Shown one piece after another: positions 5,175 through 58,102 of a stretch of 64,000 bases of DNA (position 1 is its first letter; each line of letters begins with the position of its first letter). Under the pieces are notes generated by a model. The model was not told the DNA's origin. It saw only the letters and a list, made by a program, of their open reading frames with translations, and did no database searches. The DNA is taken from assembly GCF_020745735.1 (NCBI RefSeq), contig NC_083438.1, positions 38,359,949-38,423,948 of the forward strand, written 5' to 3'. Origin of the DNA: Hemiscyllium ocellatum. Lineage: Eukaryota. A program made the translations under genes and the position numbers.

Positions 5175-6200
5175 TGGTGTTATCATCACTGATTTCGCCT
5201 GGGGAACATCCTGGGGGTATTATTGACCAGAAACTCAACTGGACCCACCACATAACCCCAGCGGCTCCAAGAGCAGGTCAGAGGCTAGGAATCCTGCAGC
5301 GAGTAACTCCCCTCCCGACTCCCCCCAAAGCCTGTCCCACCATCGACAAGGCCCAAGGCAGGAGGGGGAGGGAATACTCCCCACTTGCCCCTGGATGGGG
5401 GCAGCTCCAACAACACTCAAGAAGCTCGACACCATCCAGGGACAAAGCAGCCCCCGCTGGATTGGCCCCACACCCACAAACATCCCCTCCCTCCCCCCAC
5501 CGACACTCAGTAACAGCAGTGTGTACCATCCCCTCCCTCCCCCCACCCCCCCTCAGTAACAGCAGTGTGTACCATCCCCTCCCTCCCCCCACCCCCCCTC
5601 AGTAACAGCAGTGTGTACCATCCCCTCCATCCCCCCACCAACCCTCAGTAACAGCAGTGTGTACCTTCCCCTCCATCCCCCCACCAACCCTCAGTAACAG
5701 CAGTGTGTACCATCCCCTCCCTCCCCCCCACCCCCCCCCTCAGTAACAGCAGTGTGTACCATCCCCTCCCTCCCCCCACCCCCCCCTCAGTAACAGCAGT
5801 GTGTACCATCCCCTCCCTCCCCCCCACCACCCCCTCAGTAACAGCAGTGTGTACCATCCCCTCCCTCCCCCCCACCCCCCCACCCCCCTCAGTAACAGCA
5901 GTGTTGTACCAGTTACTCTCAGGCAGCACCTTCCAAACCCACGGCCACTTCCATCTGGAAGGACAAGGGGCAGCAGGTACATGGGAACCCCACTCCCCTG
6001 CAAGTTCCCCTCCGAACCCCTCACCATCCCGACTTGGAAATCTATCGGCTGTTCCTTCCTGGGACAGAATCCTGGGATTCCCTCCCTCAGGGACATTGTG
6101 GGTCTACCCTACAGCACATGGACTGCAGCGGGTCAAGATGGCTACTTCTCAAGGGGGACAACTAGGGACGGGTATTGGGCCCAGCCAACAATGTGAATAA
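5175..6200 (+). mobile_element. CR1/L2-clade LINE 3' part with an internal C-rich minisatellite (about 5500-5910)
   Basis: KLNWTHHI..AAPRAGQRLGILQRVT...EYSPLA resembles a degenerate RT C-terminus; contains an approximately 45-bp unit cagtaacagcagtgtgtaccatcccctccctccccccacccccct. Confidence 0.75.
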
Positions 6201-6249: not shown

Positions 6250-6594
6250 ATGGTGCTGTTGTGACTGTGTACACCTTGGAGTCTGTGTACGGGAATCGGG
6301 ACCAGACGGTGATCCTCCCATGTCGCCTCATCGTTTCCGGTCCTGAGGTGAACGTGGTCTCTGTAACCTGGAAGGGTCCAAACGGGACCAACATTGCTGT
6401 GTACAGCCCTCAGCACGGGGTCAATTACCCAGGAGAGGGTAACTCCAGTCTCATTTCATTCCAAAACCCTTCGAAGGAAGATGCCACACTGGTGATCAGA
6501 AACTTGAGCAGAAGAGACGCCGGACTCTATGCCTGTTCCTGGACAACGTATCCGGACGGAATCTTTTCGAGTGAAACGGTGTTGACTATTTCAG
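6250..6594 (+). CDS. Gene A IgV exon (nectin/PVR-family receptor, CD226/CD96/TIGIT-like V domain)
   Basis: Acceptor ttttattag| and donor tcag|gtgagg; 345 nt, phase 1-1. Encodes DGAVVTVY...TVILPCRL...VSVTWK...IAVYSPQHG...DATLVIRNLSRRDAGLYACSWTTYPDG...VLTIS, with V-set Cys/Trp/DxGxYxC, the AX6G motif and the TYP motif of the PVR family. Confidence 0.93.
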
Positions 6595-6959
6595 GTGAGG
6601 GAAGCAACACTGGACAGCACTTTGTGCAGAGGTAACAATACGATGGCAGCATTTGAGGAATCCCTGGGTTGCTACACCAGGAACCCGTCTCTTTGGCAGA
6701 GAGCTGCAATTGCAGAGGAATTGACGGATATGTCTGGAATGTGACTGTATCAGTGTTAGTGACCATAAAATGATTATTGATCACAAGGAAAAAAAACCCT
6801 AAAGTTGGTGGTTATCAGCAGTGTTCTGTCCGATATGTAACTCCAGACCCACAGCGATGTCACTGACTCCGAGAGTCCCTCCAGTGCAGAAAGAGGCCAT
6901 TCGGCCAATCACGTCTACACCGGGACTGCAAAGAGCATCCACCTCCCTCCAACCTTGTG

Positions 6960-7515
6960 TTTCCCATGGCCAATCCACCCTAAGCTGCACATCCCTGGGC
7001 ACTATGGGACAATTTCCCATGGTCAATCCACCCTAGCCTACACATCCCTGGGCACTATGGGACAATTTCCCATGGCCAATCCACCCTAACCTGCACATCC
7101 CTGGACACTATGTGACAATTTAGCATGGCCAATCCACCCTAACCTGCACATCCCTGGGCACTATGGGACAATTTCCCATGGCCAATCCACCCTAACCTGC
7201 ATATCCCTGGGCACTATGGGACAATTTCCCATGGCCAATCCACCCTAACCTGCACATCCCTGGGCACTATGGGACAATTTAGCATGGCCAATCCACCCTA
7301 ACCTACACAACCCTGGGCACTATGGGACAATTTAGCATGGACAATCCACCCTAGCGTGCAAATCTTTGGACTGTGGGAGGAAACCAGAGCACCTGAAGTA
7401 AACCCCCACAGACACGGGGAGGATGTACAAGCTCCACACAGACAGGTGCCCGAGGCTGGAATCGAATTCGGGTCCCTGGCGCTGTGAGGCAGCAGTGCTA
7501 ACCACCGTGCCACCC
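6960..7515 (-). repeat. V-SINE with expanded 53-bp internal tandem repeat (about 7 units)
   Basis: Unit ccctaacctgcacatccctgggcactatgggacaatttcccatggccaatcca, followed by the SINE head at 7345-7515. Confidence 0.9.
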
Positions 7516-7534
7516 TGAGAGCGAGCCTGGCCCT

Positions 7535-7800
7535 CCAACAACCATGATCATCTCCCTGCGTATCAGCTATGACTCCAACCGTTCGAGACTTTGCCCCCCG
7601 ATACCCATTGAATCCAGCTTTACCAGCGCTCCGTGATACCGCACTCGGTCGAATGTGGCCTTGATGTCAAGAACTGTCACTCTCCCCTCCCCTCGCTCAA
7701 TTTAGCCTGTGGTGAGCCAAGGCTAGACTGAGGTCAGGAGCTGAGTGGTCCAGGTGGAACCCAAGCTGGGCAGGTCATTGCTGAGCAGGTGCTGGTAGCA
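7535..7800 (-). mobile_element. Degenerate LINE RT fragment
   Basis: Minus-strand translation VLDIKATFDRV..GALVKLDSMGIGG resembles the CR1/L2 RT motif LDI.KAFD.V. Confidence 0.6.
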
Positions 7801-8609
7801 GCACTGTTTTGTAATATGGCGTGCGTCAGTGTGTGCTGAATTGCCTCAAATAGAAGCAATTAAATCAGGCAATATTCAAATGCGGTTGAAGTGCATCACT
7901 TTTTCTTCCTCTATCTTAGAGTCACTTCCTTTTTTAGCTGCCAGTTCTCCCCAATATTTGTAAACACTGCAAACGCTCAATCACACTTCCTGAGTCAAAA
8001 AACCCTGATGTTACTGGAACTTCAACAGAAAGGGTATTTTCTTTTCTTTTTTTGTCACTGGCTATGCCACCATCTCTCGCCCACATTTTACCCAATTTAT
8101 AAAATGTCTGAACAAGGTAGTAGGTTAGGGGATAATAGTGGGCTACTGAATGGCCGATGCAGTGCATTGACATGGACAGCATGGAAACAGGCCCTTCGGC
8201 CCATCTCATCTGTGCTGACAAGATATCTAAATTAATCACAGAAGCCCTACAGTGTGGAAACAGGCCCTTCGGCCCAACAAGCCCATACTGGCCCTCTGAA
8301 GAGTAACACAACCAAACTCATTCCCTGATACTCTACCTTTACACCTGACTAATGCACCTAAACTAATTAAAAATCACACAACAGCTCAAACCTGTTGGAC
8401 TATAACCTGTTAGGAGAAAGTGAGGTCTGCAGATGCTGGAGATCAGAGCTGAAAATGTGTTGCTGGAAAAGCGCAGCAGGTCAGGCAGCATCCAAGGAGC
8501 AGGAGATTTGACGTTTCGGGCATGAGCCTTTCTTCAGGACTATAACCTGGTGTTGTGTGATTTTCTTAATTTTGTACACCCCAGCTCAACACTGGTACCT
8601 CCAAATTGC

Positions 8610-9200
8610 ACCAACCTGCACATCCCTGGACACTATGGGTAATTTCCCATGGTCAATCCACTCTAACCTACACATCCCTGGGCACTATGGGACAATTTCC
8701 CATGGCCAATCCACCCTAACCTGCACATCCCTGGGGACTATGGGACAATTTCCCATGGCCAATCCACCCTAACCTGCACATCCCTGGGCATTACAGGACA
8801 ATTTCCCATGGCCAATCCACCCTAACCTGCACATTCCTGGGCACTATGGGACAATTACCCATGGCCAATCCAGTGTAACCTGCACATCCCTGGGCACTAT
8901 GGGACAATTTCCCATGGCCAATCCACCCTAACCTGCACATCCCTGGACACTATGGGACAATTTCCCATGGCCAATCCACCCTAACCTGCACATCCCTGGA
9001 CACTATAGGACAATTTCCCATGGCCAATCCACCCTAACCTGCACATCTTTGGATTGTGGGAGGAAACCGGAGCCCCTGAAGGAAACCCACGCAGACACGG
9101 GGAGAATGTGCAAACCCCACACAGACAGTCACCTGAGGGTGAGATCAAACCCGGGTCCCTGGTACCCTGAGGCATCAGTGCTAACCACTGAGCCACCTAA
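8610..9200 (-). repeat. V-SINE with 53-bp internal array (about 8 units)
   Basis: Same 53-bp unit, with the SINE head at 9050-9200. Confidence 0.9.
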
Positions 9201-9204
9201 CCCA

Positions 9205-10260
9205 TTTGCTAGCAGTTGGTCTATAAACCCTTCCTGTTCATATACCCATCCAGATGCCTTTTAAATGTTGTCATTGTACCACTTCCTCTGGCAGCTCATT
9301 CCATACACGTACCACCCTCTGTGTGATAAAGTTGCTCCCCAAGTCCCTTTTAAATCTTTCCCCCCTCACCTTCAATCTAGTTCTGGACTCCCCCACCCTG
9401 GAGAAAGACTTTGTCAGTTCACCCTATCCATGTCCCTCACGATTTTATAAACCTCTATGAGGTCATCGGTTTAGATAAATGGGAGGTGTTGCGTTTTGGG
9501 TAAACGAACAAGGGCAGAGCTTATACAGTTAATGGTTGGGCCCAGGGTGGTGCTGTAGAACAGAGGGACCTGGGGTTCAGGGACACAATCCTTTGACAGG
9601 GAGGTTAACAATGGATTTAGCACACTTCCCTTCATTGCTCAGCCCTTTGAGTGTAGGAGTTGGGAACGTCACATTGAGGTTGTACAGGACATTGGTGAGG
9701 CCCCTTCTGGAATACTGTGTCCAGTTCTGGTCACCCTGTTATAGGACAGATATTATTATACTGGAGAGGGTTCAGGAGAGATTTCCCAGGATGTTGCTGG
9801 GAATGGGAAGGTTTGAGTTATAAAGAAAGGCTGGATAGGCTGGGACTTCTTTCACTGGAGCGTAGGAGGCTGAGGGGTGACCTATTAGAGGTTTATAAAA
9901 TCAGGACGGGCACGGCTAGAGTAAATAGCAGGTGTCCTTTCCCTAGGATGGAGGGCTTCAAGACTAGGGGGAGATGGGGGTTTATTTTTAAGGTGAGAGG
10001 AGAAGGATTTAAAAAAGGCATGAGGAGGAGATTTTTTTCACACAGAGGGCTTTGTGTGTGGAATGAACTTCCTGAGAAAGTGGTGGATGTAGGTGCAATT
10101 ATAATGTTTAAAAGACATTTGAATAAGGACCTGAATAGGAAAGGGTTGGAGGGACCTGGGCCAGGAGCAGGCAGGGGGGACTAGTTTAGTTTGGGCACAT
10201 GGTCAGTAAGGACTGGTTGGACCGAAGGGTCTGTTTCTGTGCTGTCTGACTCTATGACTG
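9205..10260. mobile_element. Two CR1 3' fragments in opposite orientation (about 9205-9460 minus; about 9465-10260 plus)
   Basis: [17 protein letters not shown]...ERLDRLGLLSLERRRLRGDL motifs and a 3' tail ending in ctctatgac. Confidence 0.85.
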
Positions 10261-10274
10261 GGAGAGACAATGAT

Positions 10275-10560
10275 CTAATGTTATTACCGCAATTACCACA
10301 GAGACTCAGCTAATGTTCTGGGAGTCAGGTTCAAATCCCACCATGGTGAAATTTGAATTCAGTTAAGAATCTTGAGTTAAGAGTCTAATGATGACCACAA
10401 ATCCATTGTCTGAGAAACCCATCTGGTTCACTAATGTCCTTCAGGGAAGGAAACTGCCATCCTTACCTGGTCTGGGCCTCCATGTGACTCCACACCCACA
10501 GTGATGTGGTTGACTCTTAACTACCCTCTGGGCAATTAGGGATGGGGAATAAATGCTGGG
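10275..10560 (+). mobile_element. Second SINE family (DeuSINE/SacSINE1-like by recollection); further copies at about 14095-14345 (-) and 30960-31150 (+)
   Basis: Shared core cccatctggttcactaatgtccttcagggaaggaaa...gtgactcca...gtggttgactct. The family name is an inference. Confidence 0.6.
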
Positions 10561-10741
10561 GCTAGCCAGAGGCAGATGCATCCTGAGAGTGAATAAATAA
10601 AAAATCTCTCAAAACTTACATCACGATATATTTTTGCTTGCCATGGAGATGATATTGGATACAGGACAGCCAGTGTTATATTTCACATACATTTATTCAT
10701 GGATTTCCTTCTGCCTATTGGAAATGTACTTGCTCTTCCAG

Positions 10742-10861
10742 AGGATACCCCGGTAAGATTCCGAGTGTACGTTATCCTTGCGGTCATCTGCCTGGTGCTG
10801 CTGCTTGGTCTGCTGTTATTGGCGTACGCGTTGGTGAGCTGGGTGAGCCAACACCTTCAGG
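10742..10861 (+). CDS. Gene A transmembrane exon
   Basis: Acceptor tgctcttccag| and donor g|gtaagt; 120 nt, phase 1-1. Encodes EDTPVRFRVYVILAVICLVLLLGLLLLAYALVSWVSQHLQ, a long uncharged hydrophobic stretch in frame with the V exon. Confidence 0.88.
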
Positions 10862-10992
10862 GTAAGTTGACTGTTAAATGTGAACCACGACGACAAGTTG
10901 TATCAATGCTCACAGGTTTCCCGGTGATGTCACTGACGGACACAGAGCTGCATGTTCACCTCCCGGTCAACACACAGAATGGTTATAGTTAG

Positions 10993-11188
10993 NNNNNNNN
11001 NNNNNNNNNNNNNNNNNNNNNNNNNNNNNNNNNNNNNNNNNNNNNNNNNNNNNNNNNNNNNNNNNNNNNNNNNNNNNNNNNNNNNNNNNNNNNNNNNNNN
11101 NNNNNNNNNNNNNNNNNNNNNNNNNNNNNNNNNNNNNNNNNNNNNNNNNNNNNNNNNNNNNNNNNNNNNNNNNNNNNNNNNNNNNNNN
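10993..11188. other. Assembly gap
   Basis: Run of N flanked by GATA-type microsatellite; a second gap lies at 11297-11444. Both are in gene A's post-TM intron. Confidence 0.99.
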
Positions 11189-11950
11189 AGATTTTTAGAT
11201 AGATAAACAGATAGAAAGATTTTCACAGTTTTTTTTAGATAGTTAGATTTCAAGGATTGTTCAAATACATAGATAAATAGATACATATTGACCAATNNNN
11301 NNNNNNNNNNNNNNNNNNNNNNNNNNNNNNNNNNNNNNNNNNNNNNNNNNNNNNNNNNNNNNNNNNNNNNNNNNNNNNNNNNNNNNNNNNNNNNNNNNNN
11401 NNNNNNNNNNNNNNNNNNNNNNNNNNNNNNNNNNNNNNNNNNNNTGGATAGATGGATAGGCAGTGAATAGATAGTTAGATAAATAGATAGATAGATAGAT
11501 AGATAGTGGGCGGCACGGTGGCACAGTGGTTAGCACTGCTGCCTCACAGCACCTGAGACCCGGGTTCAATTCCCGACTCAGGTGACTGTGTGGAGTTTGC
11601 ACGTTCTCCCTGTGTCTGCGTGGGTTTCCTCCGGGTGATCCGGTTTCCTCCCACAGTCCAAAGATGTGCGGGTCAGGTGAATTGGCCATGCTAAATTGCC
11701 CGTAGTGTTAGGTAAGGGGTAAATGTAGGGGTATGGGTGGGTTTCGCTTCGGCGGGTCGGTGTGGACTTGTTGGGCCGAAGGGCCTGTTTCCACACTGTA
11801 AGTCTAAGTCTAATAGATAGATATTCAAAGAATATTTTGGGTAGCTAAATATTCACAGACTTTTAGATAGGTAGATAGAAAAATAGATAGAAAGATAGAT
11901 ATTCACAGATTTCTCAGCAGATAGGTAAATAGATAGGTAGATAAATAATG
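11189..11950. repeat. (GATA)n-like microsatellite tract with a full V-SINE inserted at about 11508-11810
   Basis: atagatagat arrays on both sides; SINE with A/B boxes and a taagtc tail. Confidence 0.88.
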
Positions 11951-12224
11951 GTGACATGAGTTGCTAACTGGCCTAGATTATCATAGGTATGTGGATAGGA
12001 CAGTGAGTAATTAGGAAATTATGCACGGAAAGTTAATTATTTACCATCCATTGACACGCCGTTGAGTGTGATTGTGTATCATAGATGGTTGTATTGGGAG
12101 GGCAGACCGAGGAGCCTAGTTCAATTGAAGGGCAGGTGATGTGTTTGAGTCAGCATTGAATTATACTCAGAAGATTTGGCAATTACTAACTAGGCCCTTT
12201 AATATTCTTTTCCTTGCGGTTTAG

Positions 12225-12262
12225 TTGCTGGGAGGAACTCAAAGGAGACGGACCTGGATGAG
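12225..12262 (+). CDS. Gene A first cytoplasmic exon
   Basis: Acceptor ttcttttccttgcggtttag| and donor gag|gtatga; 38 nt, phase 1 to 0. Encodes VAGRNSKETDLDE and supplies exactly the phase change needed between the TM exon and the ITIM exon. Confidence 0.72.
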
Positions 12263-12899
12263 GTATGAACTACAAAAGTCTTTTTGATATTCCAGAGCAA
12301 TACGATGGAGCTCGGTAACAGTGTGTGGGGACTAAATCAATCAGATCATTGGTTCATAGCAGAAAAAGATAGGATCTGAATGAGCAACATTGAGGGAGGT
12401 GAGGGTGGAGATGACAGTTTATGGCTGAGGTACCATTCTGCATCCCAGGATATGCTGGGATTGCTGGTCACACCCAGCTCAGAGTTACTGCTCTCTCCCA
12501 TTTGACATTGCATGTCCCTGGGGAGGTATCTTGTCGTGTCCCTTCCTGTTGTCCAAGAGGACTGGGTTATAGTCCTGTCTGCTCCAGAGGTGGGTGCCAA
12601 CATTGCCAAACAGACAATATCTACAGCAAATCCCCTGGGGATATGAGTAGGTACCGTTCCTGAGTGCAGTTGTAAGTCAAATTGTACACAAGTTGGAACA
12701 CAGAACAGCACAGCATATAATATCTGTATAAATGGACCTTGGAAAGATGGGACCTCCTCTGTAAGTATGACCACCCCTCTGTAGGTCCACCTCTATGCTC
12801 ATGGAATTAAGTTCTGTTTGAGCACAATGTTTAAGGCTGACTTTCCAGTGGATACCCGGATGATGTTGTACCGTAGGAAGGTGACAACTTCTGGCTTTG

Positions 12900-13400
12900 A
12901 ACTGGGACCCAGTCAGCAGACTAAGGAAATTCGGCACAACCATAAAGATTCTTACCAATTTTTACAGGTGCAGCATAGAGAGTATCCTATCTGGATGTAT
13001 CATGGCTGACTATGGTAACTGCTCTGACCAGGACCATAAGAAATTACAGAGCACTGTGAACTTAGCCCAGACCATTGCATAAGCCAATCTTCCATCCATT
13101 GGCGCTGTCTACACTTCCCACAGTCTCAGGAAAGCAGCCCACATCATCAAAGGTCCCTCCCACCCCCCATTATAATCTCTTCCACCCTCTTCCGCCAGGC
13201 AGGAAAGCTTAAACACACGCATCAACAGATTCAAGAACAGCTTCCTCCCTGTTGTTATCAGGCTCTTGAATGGACTTCTCAAACTGTTCAATCTCATGTT
13301 GACCTCGCTCCTTGTGCACCTTCTCCGTAGCCATGACATTGGAGTCCTTGCTCTGCTCTATCACCCGAACACACTTTGGATGGTAGGATCTGCCTGTCCT
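12900..13400 (+). mobile_element. Rex1/Babar-clade LINE 3' fragment
   Basis: RLRKFG...LTNFYRCSIESILSGCI...YGNCS.QD.KKLQ followed by RFKNSFFP.VIRLLNG-like sequence, characteristic of Rex1/Babar RT C-termini. Confidence 0.8.
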
Positions 13401-15445
13401 GCACGCAAAACTCGATTTTTTTTGTTTAGTGAGGGGCTGCTAGTGCCATTTCCCCAGTCAATTCCTGCTGCTCAGTCGCGTACAATAACAGACCAGCTGG
13501 CTCACCCTCATGAATTATTTGCTTCCTTCCGTACATTGGGAATATGACCGTGTTGAGGAAGACACCAGCATCTGTTAAGGGACAGTCACTTGTTCAGGGT
13601 GAACGACCATTTGTTGTAACTTTGCAGGGTATTGCCTGAGGCATCACTCCCACTTGTCAAATGAGATATTCCAATTGTTCTTAGTCTCATACATCTTAGA
13701 ACCGTCGACTGGAACGGAGGTCCTTTGACCCATCTAGCCTGTACTGGTGAAGCACTCTAAGTGTAAGCTAGTACTAATTTCCTGCACTTGCCCCATAGTG
13801 TTGAATGTTATGAAATTCCCATCCAAGTGTTTTTTTTTAAAAGGCCGTGAGGTTTCTCAGCTCAACTACACCCCCACTGTATTCCAGAACCCCCCCCCCC
13901 CCCGCCCCCCCCCACCATCACATACTTTCCTCAAACTCCCCTAAACCTCCTGCCTTTCACTTTGAAATGACTCCCCCTCCATCCCTCCCTTGTGATTGCC
14001 CCTTCAACGAAGGGGGCCGAGCTGCTTCCTCACCACTCTGTCCATGCCCCTCATTTTGTTTTATTCATTCACGTTTGAGGGTCTCTCTTACCGGGCCATC
14101 ATTTATTGCCCATCCCTAAATGCCCAGGGTGCAGTCAAGAGTCAACCCATGGCTGTGAGTCTGGAGTCACCTGTAGACACAGACCAAGTAAGGATGGTAA
14201 TTTCCTTCCCTCAGGGACATTAGTGAACCGGGTGGATTTTTCCAACAGTCAGCAATGGATCCCTGGTCATCATTGGACTCTTACTTCCACAGAGTTCAAA
14301 TTCCACCATCTACTGTTGCAGGATTTGAATGCAGGTCCCCAAAAGATTTACCGTGTTAACCGTTTGACTGTAATAACACTTGTTTTATGACTTAGTGTTA
14401 TTGCTAACACTTCTCCTTAGCCACCTCCATCAGGTCCCCCCCTCGACCTTCTCTGCTCCAGAGAAATTAACCCAAGCTCATCCAGCCTCTCTCTCTCCAT
14501 CGCTGAACTGCTCCGTCCCAGGGCAACACCCTGGTGCATCTCCCTCTGTACCCCCTTCCTCTACAATCACATCCTTCCTGTCATGTGGGGACCAGAACTG
14601 CACACAGTACTCCAGCAGTGGCCTCACCAAAGTTCTGTACAGCTCCAGCACTACCTCCCTGACGTTACAATCTATGCCATGACCAATGCTGAATGCCTTA
14701 TTGACCACTTCTTAACCTACTCTGCTCCATTCAGGGATCTGTGGACAGGCACTCCAATATCTCTCTGTGCCTCTCAGCTTCCTGTCCAATGAGCGCTCCC
14801 TGGCCTTGCGTTGACATGTCTACATTTTACTAACTAAGTTAAAAATCACACAACACCAGGTTATAGCCCAATAGGTTTATTTGGAAGCACTAGCTTTCAG
14901 AGCACTGCTCCTTCATCAGATGGTTGTGGAGCACACATAGAATTGATAGCAAAAGTTTACAGTGTGATACAACTACAATTATACATTGAAAGGTGCCTTG
15001 AATATTTATTCAGTCTCTCAGCTGTTAGAATGACCGTGTTGGTTTCAGTTCTTTCCGATGTAAATTGCAAAACCTTTTTTTAAAAAGTTACATTCTCAAA
15101 TACACTTCAACAATTGGTGTCTGTCAGTCCAGATAATGTATTGAAGGTGTTAGCCCCCCTGTGTGCTGCTGTCTGTGCCATTATGTGACTGTGACTGATT
15201 CTAATCTAAAAAATGAGTTGACAGAGTCTTACATAGATTCCTGCAGTTTTTGAGCTCAGAGTTCTACATGGATGTATGCAGTTTTTGAGCAAAATGCAAT
15301 GTAACTCTGCAAGTACAAATTCACCGCACACAACATGTATGTGTATGTGTGCATGTGGGTGTTAGCGAAGCTGGCATTTGAAAGGAACAATGGTACACGT
15401 TGATAAAATGTTTTCACCAAGATAAAACATGTTATTTTTCAATAG

Positions 15446-15574
15446 TGCCCCAGTGAGATTGTGTACACATCCGTGAATATACAGCAGCAGAATGTCGGAA
15501 CACCGAAGGGTTGGCACCATGAAGATAATGTCGATTCAGAGGAGATTGTCTATAGTGTTCTCAAACACAAGTAG
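15446..15574 (+). CDS. Gene A terminal exon with two ITIMs
   Basis: Acceptor gttatttttcaatag|, phase 0. Encodes CPSEIVYTSVNIQQQNVGTPKGWHHEDNVDSEEIVYSVLKHK* (TAG at 15572-15574). IVYTSV and IVYSVL both fit (I/V/L/S)xYxx(L/V/I); the tyrosines are 29 aa apart. Confidence 0.85.
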   Translation, partial: CPSEIVYTSVNIQQQNVGTPKGWHHEDNVDSEEIVYSVLKHK

Positions 15575-20429: not shown

Positions 20430-20820
20430 AGCAGGAGGATGGAAGAACACAGCAAGGCAGGCAGCATCAGGAGGGACAGGCAGGAGGCTGGGAGAACACA
20501 GCAAGGCAGGCAGCATCAGGAGGGACAGGCAGGAGGCTGGGGGAACACAGCAAGGCAGGCAGCATCAGGAGGGACAGGCAGGAGGCTGGGGGAACACAGC
20601 AAGGCAGGCAGCATCAGGAGGGACAGGCAGGAGGCTGGGAGAACACAGCAAGGCAGGCAGCATCAGGAGGGACAGGCAGGAGGCTGGGGAAACACAGCAA
20701 GGCAGGCAGCATCAGGGGGACAGGCAGGAGGCTGGGGGAACACAGCAAGGCAGGCAGCACCACGAGGGACAGGCAGGACGCTGGGAGAACACAGCAAGGC
20801 AGGCAGCACCAGGAGGTGGA
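20430..20820. repeat. Same 49-bp minisatellite in reverse orientation (about 8 copies), adjoining a Penelope-like fragment
   Basis: Unit aggagggacaggcaggaggctgggggaacacagcaaggcaggcagcatc. It runs into a Penelope-like terminal region at about 20820-21170. Confidence 0.93.
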
Positions 20821-22149
20821 GAGGTCAACATTTCGGGTGGAACCGTTCTTCCGAACTGATGGTGGGGGTGAGGGGATCTGCAGATAAAGGGGTGGGCGGA
20901 ATGGGGTAGGGTTTTGTGTGGAGAGGAGGCAGCATGGTGAGGTAGGGATAGGTGGCCACAGGTCGAGGGTACAGCCTGGTTGGTCGCTGGGCGGAATGAA
21001 TCCAATTGGTCGCTGAAAGGATCAGTTGATGAGGGGAGTGGAAGGGAGAGGAGGGGGCTGGGCAGCAAACTGGCGGCTGGGAGGGAAGGTTATTTGAAAT
21101 CGGAGAACTCAATGTTGGGTCCTCCGGGCTGTAGTCTGCCCAGGTGTTGTTCCACCAATCTGTGGGCATTTGGAAATCAAGGGAAGGCAACTATCTCTGG
21201 GGAGTAAAGATTGAGCTCTCACAGAAATCTTTAAGCCCTGATTAAGCATCATCTAGAAGTGCTCAGCACTCTTAATTAATATTGCTGACAGCAGAATTCA
21301 GCTTAGAAAGGCTTGTGATGTGAACTCAACAGGGGGAGGATTGGAGATAAAGTGGAGAAGACGTAGCTTGTGAGAATTCAGTTTTATCGTTTTTTTTCTT
21401 TATTGGGTTTATATAAATGGGAATTGTGTTTATCTGAACAACTTTCATCCCAGTAAAGTTCGTGCGTAGTTAGTGCTTCAGGGAGATTGTTCAGTTTGCT
21501 AGTAATTTTGTTAATTTGCTCACTGCTGGAGTTAGGTGAATGAATTGCTACTTGTTAGTTGTGGAGGGGGTTAAAGGATTCCGTTTAATTTCCCAACTCC
21601 GTGATAACAGATTGAGGGTAGGTGTGTGGTTATTCCCCCTCGTCATGTTTCTTTATCAGATTAGGAGGTTGGCGTTTCGGGTTTTAATTATCAGGGCGGG
21701 GGTCGAACTCTCCTTTGTAGTGTCCATAAACTCAGTGTTTATGTTTCCAATCAGCTCAGAAGGCTGGAGTAGTTGGCTTATGTTGGCTCAACTTTGTGAA
21801 CTCAATTCCCACATCGATGCAGGACTCTCCTTGTCAGACTCTCCCCTTGCCTGAGGTGTGGTGACCCTCCAGTTAAATCTGTTGCCCCTCTCTCAATGCT
21901 CGGGAAGTCCCGGGGGGTCTCAGAGCTAAGCTACTTGCAAATGCATCCTGTTCAATCTCGAATGCTTTCAGTTCTGACTGTCTCAGCCTGCTTTCACACG
22001 TTTCCGTTCCCTGCAATTCACTGTGTATCTTGCACTCTCTCTTGCTAAACAGTGTATAAATTCTTCTCCCTGTTTCCTGTTCCTATCCTGAGCCTGGCCC
22101 TGCCCCCACTGTTTCAGCCTCTCTGATTCAGTCCTTGGTCACAGAGAGA

Positions 22150-56526: not shown

Positions 56527-57763
56527 CTGTCAGGGATAAACAGGAAATTAGTTCAATGTCTGCTTCCATCAAAGAGTGATCCTTCACATTAAAACAGCAA
56601 CAGCAACCTGCTCCAATTCCATTTCCAGGCCGATGTAATCGTGGGTGAGGGTTTCCTCATCATCCTGATTCAGAAATGGTCCTGCACACCACTGGAGCAT
56701 GCTGGGACTTGAACCTTCGACTCCTGGCCCAGAGCTGGTGACATTACCCCCAAACTGCTGAAGAGTAAGGCTCACTTACAGATGTTTATAAATCAACCCA
56801 GTTCAAGCCATTTCCAGCACAGCTCCCAACCTGGAGCTTCCAATTAAATCACAGGATATGGTTGTCATGGGCTGGGCCGGTGTTTATTCACCAGCTCTGA
56901 TTACCCAGAAGGGAATAAAGAGTCCAGCACATCGCTGTGAGTGATCGAGACATTGAGAGAGAGGGGTGAGTGGACAGACGAGGACAGGGACAGAAATTGA
57001 ACAGAGACAATACTGGACCTGAAGCAAAGAATCTCTTTGGGACTGAATCTGATTCTATTTTTTTATGAATAATTAAATGCCTGTTAACCGCACTGCCTTG
57101 TTCGGTCAATGGGTCTGCCAACTGATAGTCATCCACCCCTGTCTCCATCCTGGCAACATTGAACATTGACATGACATGACGATGAGACAAAGACGGGGCA
57201 GGGTCTGCCCTACAGCACATGGACTGCAGCAGGTCGAGAAGGCACCTCCCCCCACCTTCTCAATGTGGGGGGGGGGCAACGAGGGACAGGGCAGTAAATA
57301 CTGGGCCCAGCCAGTGATGCCCACGGCCCAGGAGTGAACCACTAAAAAGACCACAGGTCATTCAGACGTACTGTGAAAAGTGAGGATGGGAGCACTGACC
57401 ACAGAAACACAGAGAGGAAAAGACAGATGGGAAGAGAGGGGGGAGTTGACAGGAGCGGGGAAAGCGAAGACACGGCACTTTGAAAGGAAGGATGGATCAT
57501 CTGAAAGTAGGGGAGTGGAAGAAAGAGAGAGAGAGAGAGACACAGAGATACCTTGGAAGGCCTATGAAAGGTACTGTCCCATAAGAATAGAACTGATCTT
57601 CAGACAGGTACAATTTTTAACCTCTGATGGTAATTGTTGGGAATGTCAAATGCACCCCTCGGAATCAAACATTCACCTTGATGCCCCTCTGTTTACATTC
57701 ATTCACGTTCCTTCTCACAGATTAATCGCCAACATGAACCGTGAGTCCATGTAGGGTACTTAC

Positions 57764-58102
57764 CTAGAATCGTTAAATGGACAGTTTTTCTCAGTTTTCC
57801 TTGAGGGAATATTGCAAGATCACATGTATAATTCCCCTCATCCTGCACTTCCAACGCTTTTATTCGGATTGATCCATCCTGGACAGATTGGTTTCTCAAC
57901 TCTATCCGTCCGGAATAGTTTTCATTTGGGACAGTAAGCCCAAGCCTCGGGCTATACACAGCGATGGGCTTCTCCTGATGGTCTTTTTCCCAGGAAAGTA
58001 GTGTAAACCTCCCCCTCTCTGGTGTCAGCTGGCACGGGATCAGTACCTCGGTCCCAACAAGAGCCGTGAGGAAGACCTTGTTTCCAACGACGCAAGTTGG
58101 AA
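57764..58102 (-). CDS. Gene B D1 IgV exon (nectin-like)
   Basis: Acceptor cctttcctag| and donor ctag|gtaagt; 339 nt, phase 1-1. Encodes VPTCVVGNK...EVLIPCQL...LLSWEK...IAVYSPRLG...DGSIRIKALEVQDEGNYTCDLAIFPQG...HLTIL, with AX6G and an FP.G motif. Confidence 0.93.

Follow-up and report, generated by a model that had tools for sequence, protein, structure and literature searches.

A compact single-V nectin-family receptor gene with a tandem-ITIM tail, conserved in sharks

Whether cartilaginous fish possess compact inhibitory receptors of the nectin family, and how such receptors relate to TIGIT, is the question raised by a locus in the epaulette shark, Hemiscyllium ocellatum, which we analysed within a 64,000-nucleotide stretch of genomic DNA (the window). 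TIGIT, CD96, CD226 and PVRIG are nectin-family checkpoint receptors and drug targets. A 2026 survey placed CD96, CD226 and TIGIT in a group restricted to amniotes (PMC13262535); a study of the nectin family leaves the immune receptors untreated (PMC7286890). The original prediction for this locus, made from the DNA letters alone, described a TIGIT/PVRIG-shaped receptor with a CD226/CD96-like V domain and two ITIMs. We find that the locus holds a real gene, conserved in sharks, which encodes a nectin-family receptor with one V domain and a tandem-ITIM tail and lies next to multi-domain paralogs bearing ITAMs or ITIMs. A literature search found no paper on this compact shark receptor; databases already predict the gene.

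Exon structure of the receptor gene

The receptor gene has four coding exons on the + strand, all with canonical splice sites. The features of the locus are as follows, with a slash marking each splice boundary:

6250–6594, + strand: V-domain exon; acceptor tttattag/AT, donor CAG/gtgagg; phase 1/1; 114 full codons
10742–10861, + strand: stalk and transmembrane exon, 120 nt; from ccag/AGGAT to CAGG/gtaagt; phase 1/1; product EDTPVRFR followed by an uncharged hydrophobic span and a short juxtamembrane stretch
10993–11188 and 11297–11444, no strand: two assembly gaps, separated by 108 bases of low-complexity sequence
12225–12262, + strand: cytoplasmic mini exon, 38 nt; from gtttag/TTGCT to GATGAG/gtatga; phase 1 in, phase 0 out
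15446–15574, + strand: last coding exon; acceptor caatag/TGCCCC; 42 codons plus stop TAG at 15572–15574
15458–15475, + strand: ITIM-type motif 1, IVYTSV, in the last exon
15545–15562, + strand: ITIM-type motif 2, IVYSVL, in the last exon

Joined, the four exons give 630 nt in one frame, encoding 209 residues, preceded by a split codon. The V–transmembrane–tail architecture had been put at 210 residues without the leader, a figure that includes the mini exon and equals the 209 codons with either the stop or the split codon added. Splicing the transmembrane exon straight to the last exon would break the frame, so the mini exon, which we located through similarity to the whale-shark protein and which encodes (V)AGRNSKETDLDE, is required. 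The proposed joining of the 15446–15574 exon to the transmembrane exon runs through this mini exon in the NCBI model, and Chiloscyllium and Rhincodon share these exons and splice sites. Our exon model is identical to NCBI protein P0153, a 232-aa "uncharacterized protein LOC132833951" of H. ocellatum. The annotated gene covers 20.8 kb and the window shows no leader peptide, which puts the leader exon upstream of the window, as had been guessed.

Both N gaps fall inside the intron between the transmembrane and mini exons, with an (ATAG)n border at 11467–11500. They leave the frame unaffected, since it is carried by splice phase and not by gap continuity, and the orthologous whale-shark intron is N-free, with no extra exon in its NCBI model. 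On the + strand between positions 1 and 16 kb of the window no additional Ig exon was found, and no C2 exons for the compact receptor were found.

A nectin/PVR-family V domain conserved across sharks

The V exon encodes the Ig core residues Cys24, Trp40 and Cys95 together with three N-x-S/T sites, matches the Pfam V-set (42.8 bits, E 6.9e-11) and is modelled by AF2 with pLDDT 82–94 across the domain. In profile searches of the PDB it scored highest with nectin-1 (72.7 bits), followed by nectin-2 (64.6), CD226 (54), PVR (53.8) and nectin-3 (53.8), with CD96 (41.5), MPZ (36) and TIGIT (34.7) lower; the best 27 matches were all nectin-1, -2, -3, PVR or CD226. Foldseek aligned the domain to the V domains of nectin-1, nectin-2, PVR and TIGIT with TM-scores of 0.8–0.9 and an r.m.s.d. 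of 1.6–2 Å. Sequence, profile, fold and the tree, which was built without any verified TIGIT sequence, all place the V domain inside the nectin/PVR family, as originally proposed. The narrower label CD226/CD96-like stands at the level of the family only, because the whole V domain is nearest to nectin-1 and nectin-2 D1, ahead of CD226 and CD96.

Family docking motifs are partly retained. The AX6G motif (C′–C″) is present as AVYSPQHG at residues 49–56, its A, P and G invariant in the 8 shark orthologs, and the T(F/Y)P motif of the F–G loop is present as TYP at 99–101, with T99 and P101 invariant in the 8 orthologs and Y or F between them. The (V/I)(S/T)Q motif of strand C is not kept: V35-V36-S37 aligns with I-T-Q of nectin-1, and the orthologs have VVS or VVD.

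Orthologs occur in 8 sharks from five orders (Rhincodon, Stegostoma, Chiloscyllium, Cetorhinus, Carcharodon, Heterodontus, Pristiophorus and Heptranchias). They form a single orthologous lineage across sharks, a clade with UFboot 96 but SH-aLRT only 18, within which branching follows the shark orders. A fragment from the ray Narcine is the long-branch sister of this clade, and the same lineage is probably present in rays too. The gene is under purifying selection, with dN/dS ~0.3 for the V domain and likewise for the tail (Hemiscyllium versus Rhincodon). The last exon is 83% identical to that of whale shark, compared with 66% for the V domain, and its final 81 nt are identical in Chiloscyllium. 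Database names for this one orthologous gene range over uncharacterized, TIGIT-like, nectin-1/2/3-like and myelin P0-like, and need correcting.

The tail, the neighbouring genes and a proposed mechanism

The V domain is joined to the membrane by almost no stalk, as predicted: the final beta strand of the AF2 model reaches residue 137 and is followed by a helix spanning residues 142–182, leaving at most 8 residues. The transmembrane core, VYVILAVICLVLLLGLLLLAYALV, contains no charged residue for pairing with an ITAM adaptor and has a hydropathy of 3.29 over P0153 residues 146–164. Behind it is a tail of 63–68 residues, depending on where the transmembrane helix is taken to end. IVYTSV and IVYSVL are confirmed near the C terminus, their tyrosines 29 residues apart and the second 6 residues from the end. 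Both [IVLT]xYxx[ILV] motifs are kept in 7/7 tail-bearing orthologs, with a spacing of 24–31 and the second motif 6–7 residues from the C terminus. An ITT-like YxN motif is absent from the tail, and neither ITIM-type tyrosine is followed by x-N.

Tyrosine motifs ~22–30 residues apart, which suit tandem SH2 domains, are found in tandem-ITIM SHP-2 binders such as MPZL1/PZR, PECAM-1, SIRP-alpha, LAIR-1 and the ITIM–ITSM receptors PD-1/BTLA, whose V domains, unlike that of the shark receptor, belong to other families and do not present the AX6G/T(Y/F)P lock-and-key face.

The window contains the compact receptor gene and one nectin-like neighbour only, a convergent V-C2-C2 gene identified by tblastn:

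57762–58070, − strand: V exon of the neighbour; PDB best match nectin-1, E 3e-15
56539–56237, 53426–53283 and 46239–46090, − strand: further exons of the neighbour

The neighbour's V domain falls in a tree clade separate from that of the compact receptor. The receptor gene belongs to a shark cluster of nectin-like immunoreceptor genes, in which its neighbour is an ITAM-bearing V-C2-C2 paralog; in the ortholog flanks, no other genes lie within 10 kb. Multi-domain ITIM paralogs (the second half of Heptranchias P0002, and Heterodontus P0069) belong to the same cluster and also have a nectin-family V domain. Their tail plan matches that of the compact receptor, with ~60–67 residues and the second motif 6–8 residues from the C terminus, and the first tail motif of four other shark orthologs takes the paralogs' (E/Q)x(I/V)VYAxL form, in place of which the Hemiscyllium gene has EIVYTSV. 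The paralogs differ in having one or two C2 domains and V domains that form a separate clade, ~33% identical.

Structure prediction of a complex between the V domains of the compact receptor and its neighbour gave an ipSAE of 0.72, versus 0.00 for the best of 3 controls, with partner pLDDT of at least 88 and at least 98% of contacts common to the runs. The mark used for this score was passed by 51/78 solved complexes and 2/108 mismatched pairs. The predicted interface lies on residues 36–41, 47–60 and 96–104, the sites of the three family motifs, and its 19 residues have a dN/dS of 0.18, compared with 0.33 in the remainder of the V domain (Hemiscyllium versus Rhincodon). The pass may reflect no more than likeness to solved nectin-family V–V complexes, and does not specify which family member is bound.

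Together these features make it probable that the gene encodes a functional type I membrane protein of ~232 residues, comprising a leader, a nectin/PVR V domain, a stalk no longer than 8 residues, an uncharged transmembrane segment and a two-ITIM tail, for which we propose an inhibitory mechanism based on SHP-1/2 docking. In this mechanism, the V domain would bind another nectin-family V domain through its front face (strands C, C′, C″, F and G), which carries the AX6G 'lock' and the T(Y/F)P 'key'. Src-family kinases would then phosphorylate the two ITIM-type tyrosines, and the phosphorylated pair would dock the tandem SH2 domains of SHP-1 or SHP-2, dampening activating signals. A SHP-1/2-recruiting inhibitory receptor for nectin-family ligands is the most likely function; the ligand, phosphorylation, SHP recruitment and cell type are what we infer. 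The reading as an inhibitory checkpoint is not the sole one, as ITIM pairs also occur in SHP-2 scaffold and adhesion proteins (MPZL1, PECAM-1). Cartilaginous fish would in any case have a nectin-type V domain wired to inhibitory signalling as a design, whether by common descent or convergence, and the compact, easily expressed ectodomain offers a handle for finding its ligand.

Relation to TIGIT and other known receptors

In TIGIT, an ITT-like YxN motif stands directly before one ITIM. The shark gene might be the true ortholog, in elasmobranchs, of amniote TIGIT or of the ancestor of TIGIT, CD96 and CD226, with a tail that changed from or predates this ITT-like plus ITIM arrangement, although we think this unlikely. 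The two share the same leader–V–transmembrane–tail build, human and mouse TIGIT ranked first and second when the whole protein was compared with Swiss-Prot models by Foldseek, the Atlas feature cluster closest to the shark protein carries the name 'TIGIT-like' (0.97, 210/256 features) and NCBI automatically named the whale-shark ortholog 'TIGIT-like'; yet names, architecture and language-model features are no tests of orthology. The F–G stretch DAGLYACSWTTYPDG retrieved TIGIT first among Ig proteins at an E of only 0.27, and the proposed match at TYPDG is indeed exact in TIGIT chains, but when the V domain is taken whole these chains rank among the weakest matches in the family, at less than half the nectin-1 score. 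The tail argues against orthology as well: it has no YxN, its two motifs are 29 residues apart and not adjacent, and its layout and VYASLNL core (in four other shark orthologs; VYTSVNI here) resemble the multi-domain ITIM paralogs of the nectin-like cluster within which the gene lies.

TIGIT is like the shark receptor in having a leader, one nectin/PVR-family IgV domain, a transmembrane segment and a short ITIM tail, with AX6G and T(Y/F)P motifs and a V fold at TM-scores of 0.87–0.91; it is unlike it at 21–23% identity, and the shark protein has two ITIM-type motifs, the short stalk and a replaced glutamine in (V/I)(S/T)Q. Nectin-1 and nectin-2 D1 are the closest V sequences (30–34% identity), carry the same docking-face motifs and resemble the receptor's nectin-like neighbours, whereas a nectin has a V-C2-C2 ectodomain and a long tail that binds afadin in place of a lone V domain and an ITIM tail. 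CD226, CD96 and PVRIG are likewise immune receptors with nectin/PVR-family V domains. CD226 differs in having two Ig domains and an activating role, and CD96 in having three Ig domains; PVRIG shares the single V, transmembrane segment and ITIM-like tail, and no PVRIG chain was among the best 60 PDB sequence matches, though PVRIG complexes are in the PDB. We describe the compact receptor as a TIGIT/PVRIG-like functional analogue; TIGIT orthology is unproven, given the missing YxN motif and the place of TIGIT among the weakest matches in the family when the entire V domain is compared.

A broader proposal, which we put forward only tentatively, is that the lineage represents, in cartilaginous fish, the counterpart of the TIGIT/CD96/CD226 group, paired with the adjacent ITAM-bearing nectin-like gene through direct binding or competition for ligand. 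If so, nectin-family checkpoint receptors were present in the common ancestor of jawed vertebrates and are not amniote-restricted, and the pair would represent an ancient TIGIT/CD226-style balance.

It is considerably more doubtful that the protein is an adhesion or SHP-2-scaffold molecule of the MPZL1/PZR or PECAM-1 type, whose ITIMs would serve positive SHP-2 signalling in adhesion or migration in non-immune tissue. MPZL1 also has a V–transmembrane–two-ITIM build, MPZ and MPZL1 models ranked 3rd to 25th in the whole-protein Foldseek search, an MPZL1 cluster came second in the Atlas features search, a Heterodontus isoform is called 'myelin protein P0-like' by NCBI, and nectins are themselves adhesion molecules. 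Despite the similar whole-protein shape, a P0-type V domain is not the best match: by sequence the domain is of nectin/PVR type (MPZ 36 bits, half the nectin-1 score) and carries AX6G and T(Y/F)P. Evolution is also fast for an adhesion protein, with 66% V-domain identity between two orectolobiform sharks, and the gene adjoins ITAM- and ITIM-bearing paralogs, as is typical of paired immune receptors.

That the locus is a decaying pseudogene or an artefact of gene prediction, with joinable exons that form no single mRNA, is highly improbable: transcript-derived (Logan) sources hold no full-length identical protein, but the frame is intact, the canonical sites are kept in Chiloscyllium and Rhincodon, orthologs in five shark orders keep the motifs, dN/dS is ~0.3, and read data fit splicing. 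Those data offer a hint of expression. Run X1 (150 Mb, from the same sample as the assembly), which we only guess to be RNA, contains 100% of V-exon words but only a 0.41 share of a half-intron, half-exon probe, whereas DNA runs contain 0.93–0.98 of the same probe, a pattern that fits a spliced transcript.

Gene model, orthologs and expression

The compact receptor gene, LOC132833951, is built in the window sequence from four plus-strand exons, all bordered by canonical AG/GT sites and compatible in phase:

6250-6594, plus strand: V exon, phase 1 at both ends
10742-10861, plus strand: stalk/TM exon, 120 nt, phase 1 at both ends
12225-12262, plus strand: mini exon, 38 nt, phase 1 in and phase 0 out
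15446-15574, plus strand: last exon, terminating in TAG

Spliced together, these exons make a single 630-nt reading frame that encodes 209 residues, and its translation matches, letter for letter, the mature part of the 232-aa NCBI entry 'uncharacterized protein LOC132833951 [Hemiscyllium ocellatum]' (P0153). The mini exon, found through similarity to the whale-shark protein, explains the count of 210 residues in the original prediction, and it is essential because the TM exon spliced straight to the last exon hits a stop; that direct junction (G+TG CCC CAG TGA) is out of frame and was ruled out. The leader of the 232-aa protein, MKSAITLFLLISVWLDLNTTTR, is absent from the window and the annotated gene spans 20.8 kb, which together place the leader exon a few kb 5' of the window, where the original prediction had expected it. 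Two N runs (10993-11188 and 11297-11444) are assembly gaps amid (ATAG)n repeats in the intron between the TM and mini exons, and their continuity is immaterial to the protein because splice phase carries the reading frame. Either gap may conceal an alternative exon, none being required; the whale-shark counterpart of this intron is N-free, and the NCBI model there has no extra exon. In Chiloscyllium punctatum the three downstream exons recur with the same splice sites, and the final 81 nt of coding sequence are identical to those of Hemiscyllium. 'Hypothetical protein chiPu_0020919' (87 aa; Chiloscyllium locus L004, BEZZ01003102.1) is a truncated ortholog model limited to the TM, mini and tail exons, and the L004 stretch examined, 45% of it N, yielded no V exon.

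Skipping the 120-nt TM exon (10742-10861) preserves the frame because both its ends are in phase 1, and the zebra-shark NCBI model and horn-shark isoform X2 (P0005, P0006) lack exactly this exon; the TM-less form is possibly a secreted V-domain isoform that still bears the 'cytoplasmic' tail. A tandem-repeat scan of the window up to 11500 found three intronic arrays, one repeating a 46-bp unit 8.6 times and two sharing a 53-bp unit at about 8 copies each:

5481-5881: tandem array
6960-7364: tandem array
8613-9047: tandem array

NCBI predictions already include the gene and its orthologs, under names that are inconsistent across sharks.

Database names of predicted shark orthologs
Whale shark: 'TIGIT-like'
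Zebra shark: 'nectin-1-like'
Bamboo shark: 'hypothetical protein', truncated
Basking shark, white shark: orthologs predicted
Horn shark: 'myelin protein P0-like' and 'nectin-3-like'
Sawshark, sevengill shark: 'nectin-2-like'

No description of the family was found in the literature searched, with most subscription journals beyond reach. In a 2026 survey CD96, CD226 and TIGIT are grouped as restricted to amniotes (PMC13262535), and a 2020 study of nectins notes nectin-1 and nectin-3 in shark and leaves such receptors untreated (PMC7286890).

Sequencing run X1, from the assembly's own sample (150 M letters, guessed to be RNA), contains all sampled V-exon words and 0.41 of a probe made half of intron and half of last exon, against an exon-only expectation of about 0.46 and 0.93-0.98 in DNA-like runs. 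This pattern fits a spliced transcript, short of proving the junctions. Runs X2-X5 were set aside as expression evidence: they are DNA-like, and same-study sister runs contain 0.98 of the intron-containing probe. That the gene is an artefact or pseudogene is barely credible.

A V domain of the nectin/PVR family

The V exon encodes a V-set domain by Pfam, and a profile of eight orthologs ranks nectin-1 first among all PDB sequences.

Best family scores, ortholog profile against PDB sequences (bits)
Nectin-1: 72.7
Nectin-2: 64.6
CD226: 54
PVR: 53.8
Nectin-3: 53.8
CD96: 41.5
TIGIT: 34.7
Nectin-4: 32

The AlphaFold2 (AF2) model has pLDDT 82-94 across the V domain and superposes at 1.6-2 Å on the V domains of nectin-1, nectin-2, PVR and TIGIT. 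Two of the three docking-face motifs of the nectin family, AX6G (as AVYSPQHG) and T(Y/F)P, are present with key residues invariant in all orthologs; the third, (V/I)(S/T)Q, is not kept, and VVS or VVD stands in its place in the compact receptor and its orthologs. Pfam assignment, PDB ranking, fold and motifs therefore place the V domain firmly in the nectin/PVR family. Judged by sequence over its whole length, the domain resembles nectin-1 and nectin-2 more than CD226, CD96 or TIGIT, so that the original description of a CD226/CD96-like V domain holds for the family and fails for the closest relatives (nectin-1 72.7 bits versus 54 and 41.5). The TYPDG match to TIGIT given there is exact, and TIGIT is the top Ig-protein match of the F-G stretch searched alone, at an E value of 0.27 that is not significant by itself. 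A 21-residue C'-C'' fragment had no PDB match.

A V-domain tree of 91 rows, covering nearest representatives only, joins the orthologs in one group (UFboot 96, SH-aLRT only 18) whose internal order tracks the shark orders, and a truncated electric-ray protein is its long-branch sister. Homolog searches with protein P0003 and with the ortholog alignment retrieved shark orthologs, a single marsupial nectin-2-like protein and nothing else; TIGIT, CD226 and PVRIG were absent from the hits.

Divergence between Hemiscyllium and Rhincodon
V domain: 66% amino acid identity, dN 0.222, dS 0.739, dN/dS about 0.3
Tail exon: 83% amino acid identity, dN 0.114, dS 0.375, dN/dS about 0.3

On 19 predicted docking-face residues dN/dS is 0.18, versus 0.33 in the rest of the V domain, a comparison with small underlying numbers. 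Across the V and TM exons (6252-6593 and 10744-10860, against 12857-13198 and 20806-20922 of the whale-shark locus L005) dS is about 0.73, some 2.5 times the divergence of flanking orthologous introns (21-25% different, JC about 0.25-0.31); gene conversion from paralogs, CpG effects or small-sample noise are possible sources of the excess.

Tail architecture and a putative inhibitory role

Much of the predicted TIGIT-like shape was borne out. In the AF2 model the final strand ends at residue 137 and the helix begins at 142, so that the near-absent stalk is at most 8 residues, and the hydrophobic core of the TM segment is uncharged. Neither an Ig pattern scan nor tblastn with a V-C2-C2 protein found a further Ig exon on the nearby plus strand, ruling out hidden Ig exons there. 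The two ITIM-type motifs, IVYTSV and IVYSVL, are confirmed in the joined frame, with tyrosines 29 residues apart and the second 6 residues from the C-terminal end. Both tyrosine motifs occur in all seven tail-bearing orthologs, spaced by 24-31 residues, with the second 6-7 residues from the C terminus. A cysteine just 5' of the first ITIM (15446-15448; DEC-x-x-E-[IVL]-V-Y) is likewise invariant in all tail-bearing orthologs.

We consider the compact receptor to be probably an inhibitory immunoreceptor that would combine nectin-family ligand docking with SHP-1/SHP-2 recruitment, the best-supported reading. The V domain would dock a nectin-family ligand through its canonical face, and the two phosphotyrosines, spaced for tandem SH2 domains, would recruit SHP-1 or SHP-2. 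By analogy, the receptor is predicted to work like TIGIT or PVRIG, with no claim of TIGIT membership. True orthology to the TIGIT group is unlikely. Whole-protein structure comparison puts human and mouse TIGIT at the top and the MPZ/MPZL family next, and the closest Atlas feature cluster is named 'TIGIT-like', but both results describe shape and do not establish descent. The TIGIT tail consists of an ITT-like YxN followed by an ITIM, a layout that the compact receptor does not share, and over the whole V domain TIGIT is among the weakest family matches. An MPZL1-like scaffold or adhesion protein is more doubtful still, and the V-domain profile scores against PDB rule out membership of MPZL1 itself.

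The neighbouring gene and paralogs

The window contains one other gene, of nectin-like V-C2-C2 type, which lies on the minus strand and is convergent with the compact receptor gene:

58070-57762, minus strand: V exon (tblastn, PDB match)
about 56.5, 53.4 and 46.2 kb, minus strand: C2 exons (tblastn)

The predicted complex of the compact V domain with the neighbour V domain scored ipSAE 0.72, versus 0.00 for the best of three controls, with partner pLDDT of at least 88 and at least 98% of contacts common to runs. Of 78 solved complexes 51 attain the mark it passed, as do 2 of 108 mismatched pairs, and the predicted interface coincides exactly with the three family motifs. As modelled, the compact receptor shows a docking face of nectin-family type; because many nectin-family V-V complexes have been solved, the pass indicates such a face and not binding of these two proteins.

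In the sevengill shark Heptranchias perlo, the 688-aa NCBI 'nectin-2-like' model (P0002, XP_067831298.1) fuses a compact receptor (residues 1-232) to a downstream V-C2-C2 gene carrying TVYASL and TVYADI motifs. A second leader, MTLVIWISSACIALLSV, is visible inside this read-through; in Heptranchias the three-domain ITIM gene therefore sits downstream of the compact receptor and on its strand, whereas the neighbour in the window is convergent. Compact and multi-domain ITIM genes have a common tail plan, and a VYASL(N/Y) core is common to the sevengill, horn, saw and basking shark compact orthologs and the multi-domain paralogs (VYTSVNI in Hemiscyllium). These sequence likenesses hint at a shared origin of the two gene types within the cluster; their V domains fall in separate clades of the V-domain tree.

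P0045 (Mustelus asterias) and P0020 (Rhincodon typus) represent a second, separate line of small shark V receptors of the nectin family and form a starred clade adjoining, and outside, the compact-receptor clade. P0045 is a V-TM protein with IEYAAL and TVYATV (ITIM plus ITSM-like), and the whale-shark chromosome record that carries P0020 also carries the compact receptor. Outside the shark clade, P0138 (loci L001-L003) adds a further compact ITIM receptor of the nectin family, a V-TM protein of 245 aa encoded by transcript contigs of about 1 kb in three runs (SRR22387073, SRR22387074 and SRR22387080). It has ATFPAG and an ITQ motif, and its tail carries VVYSEV and VTYSEV.
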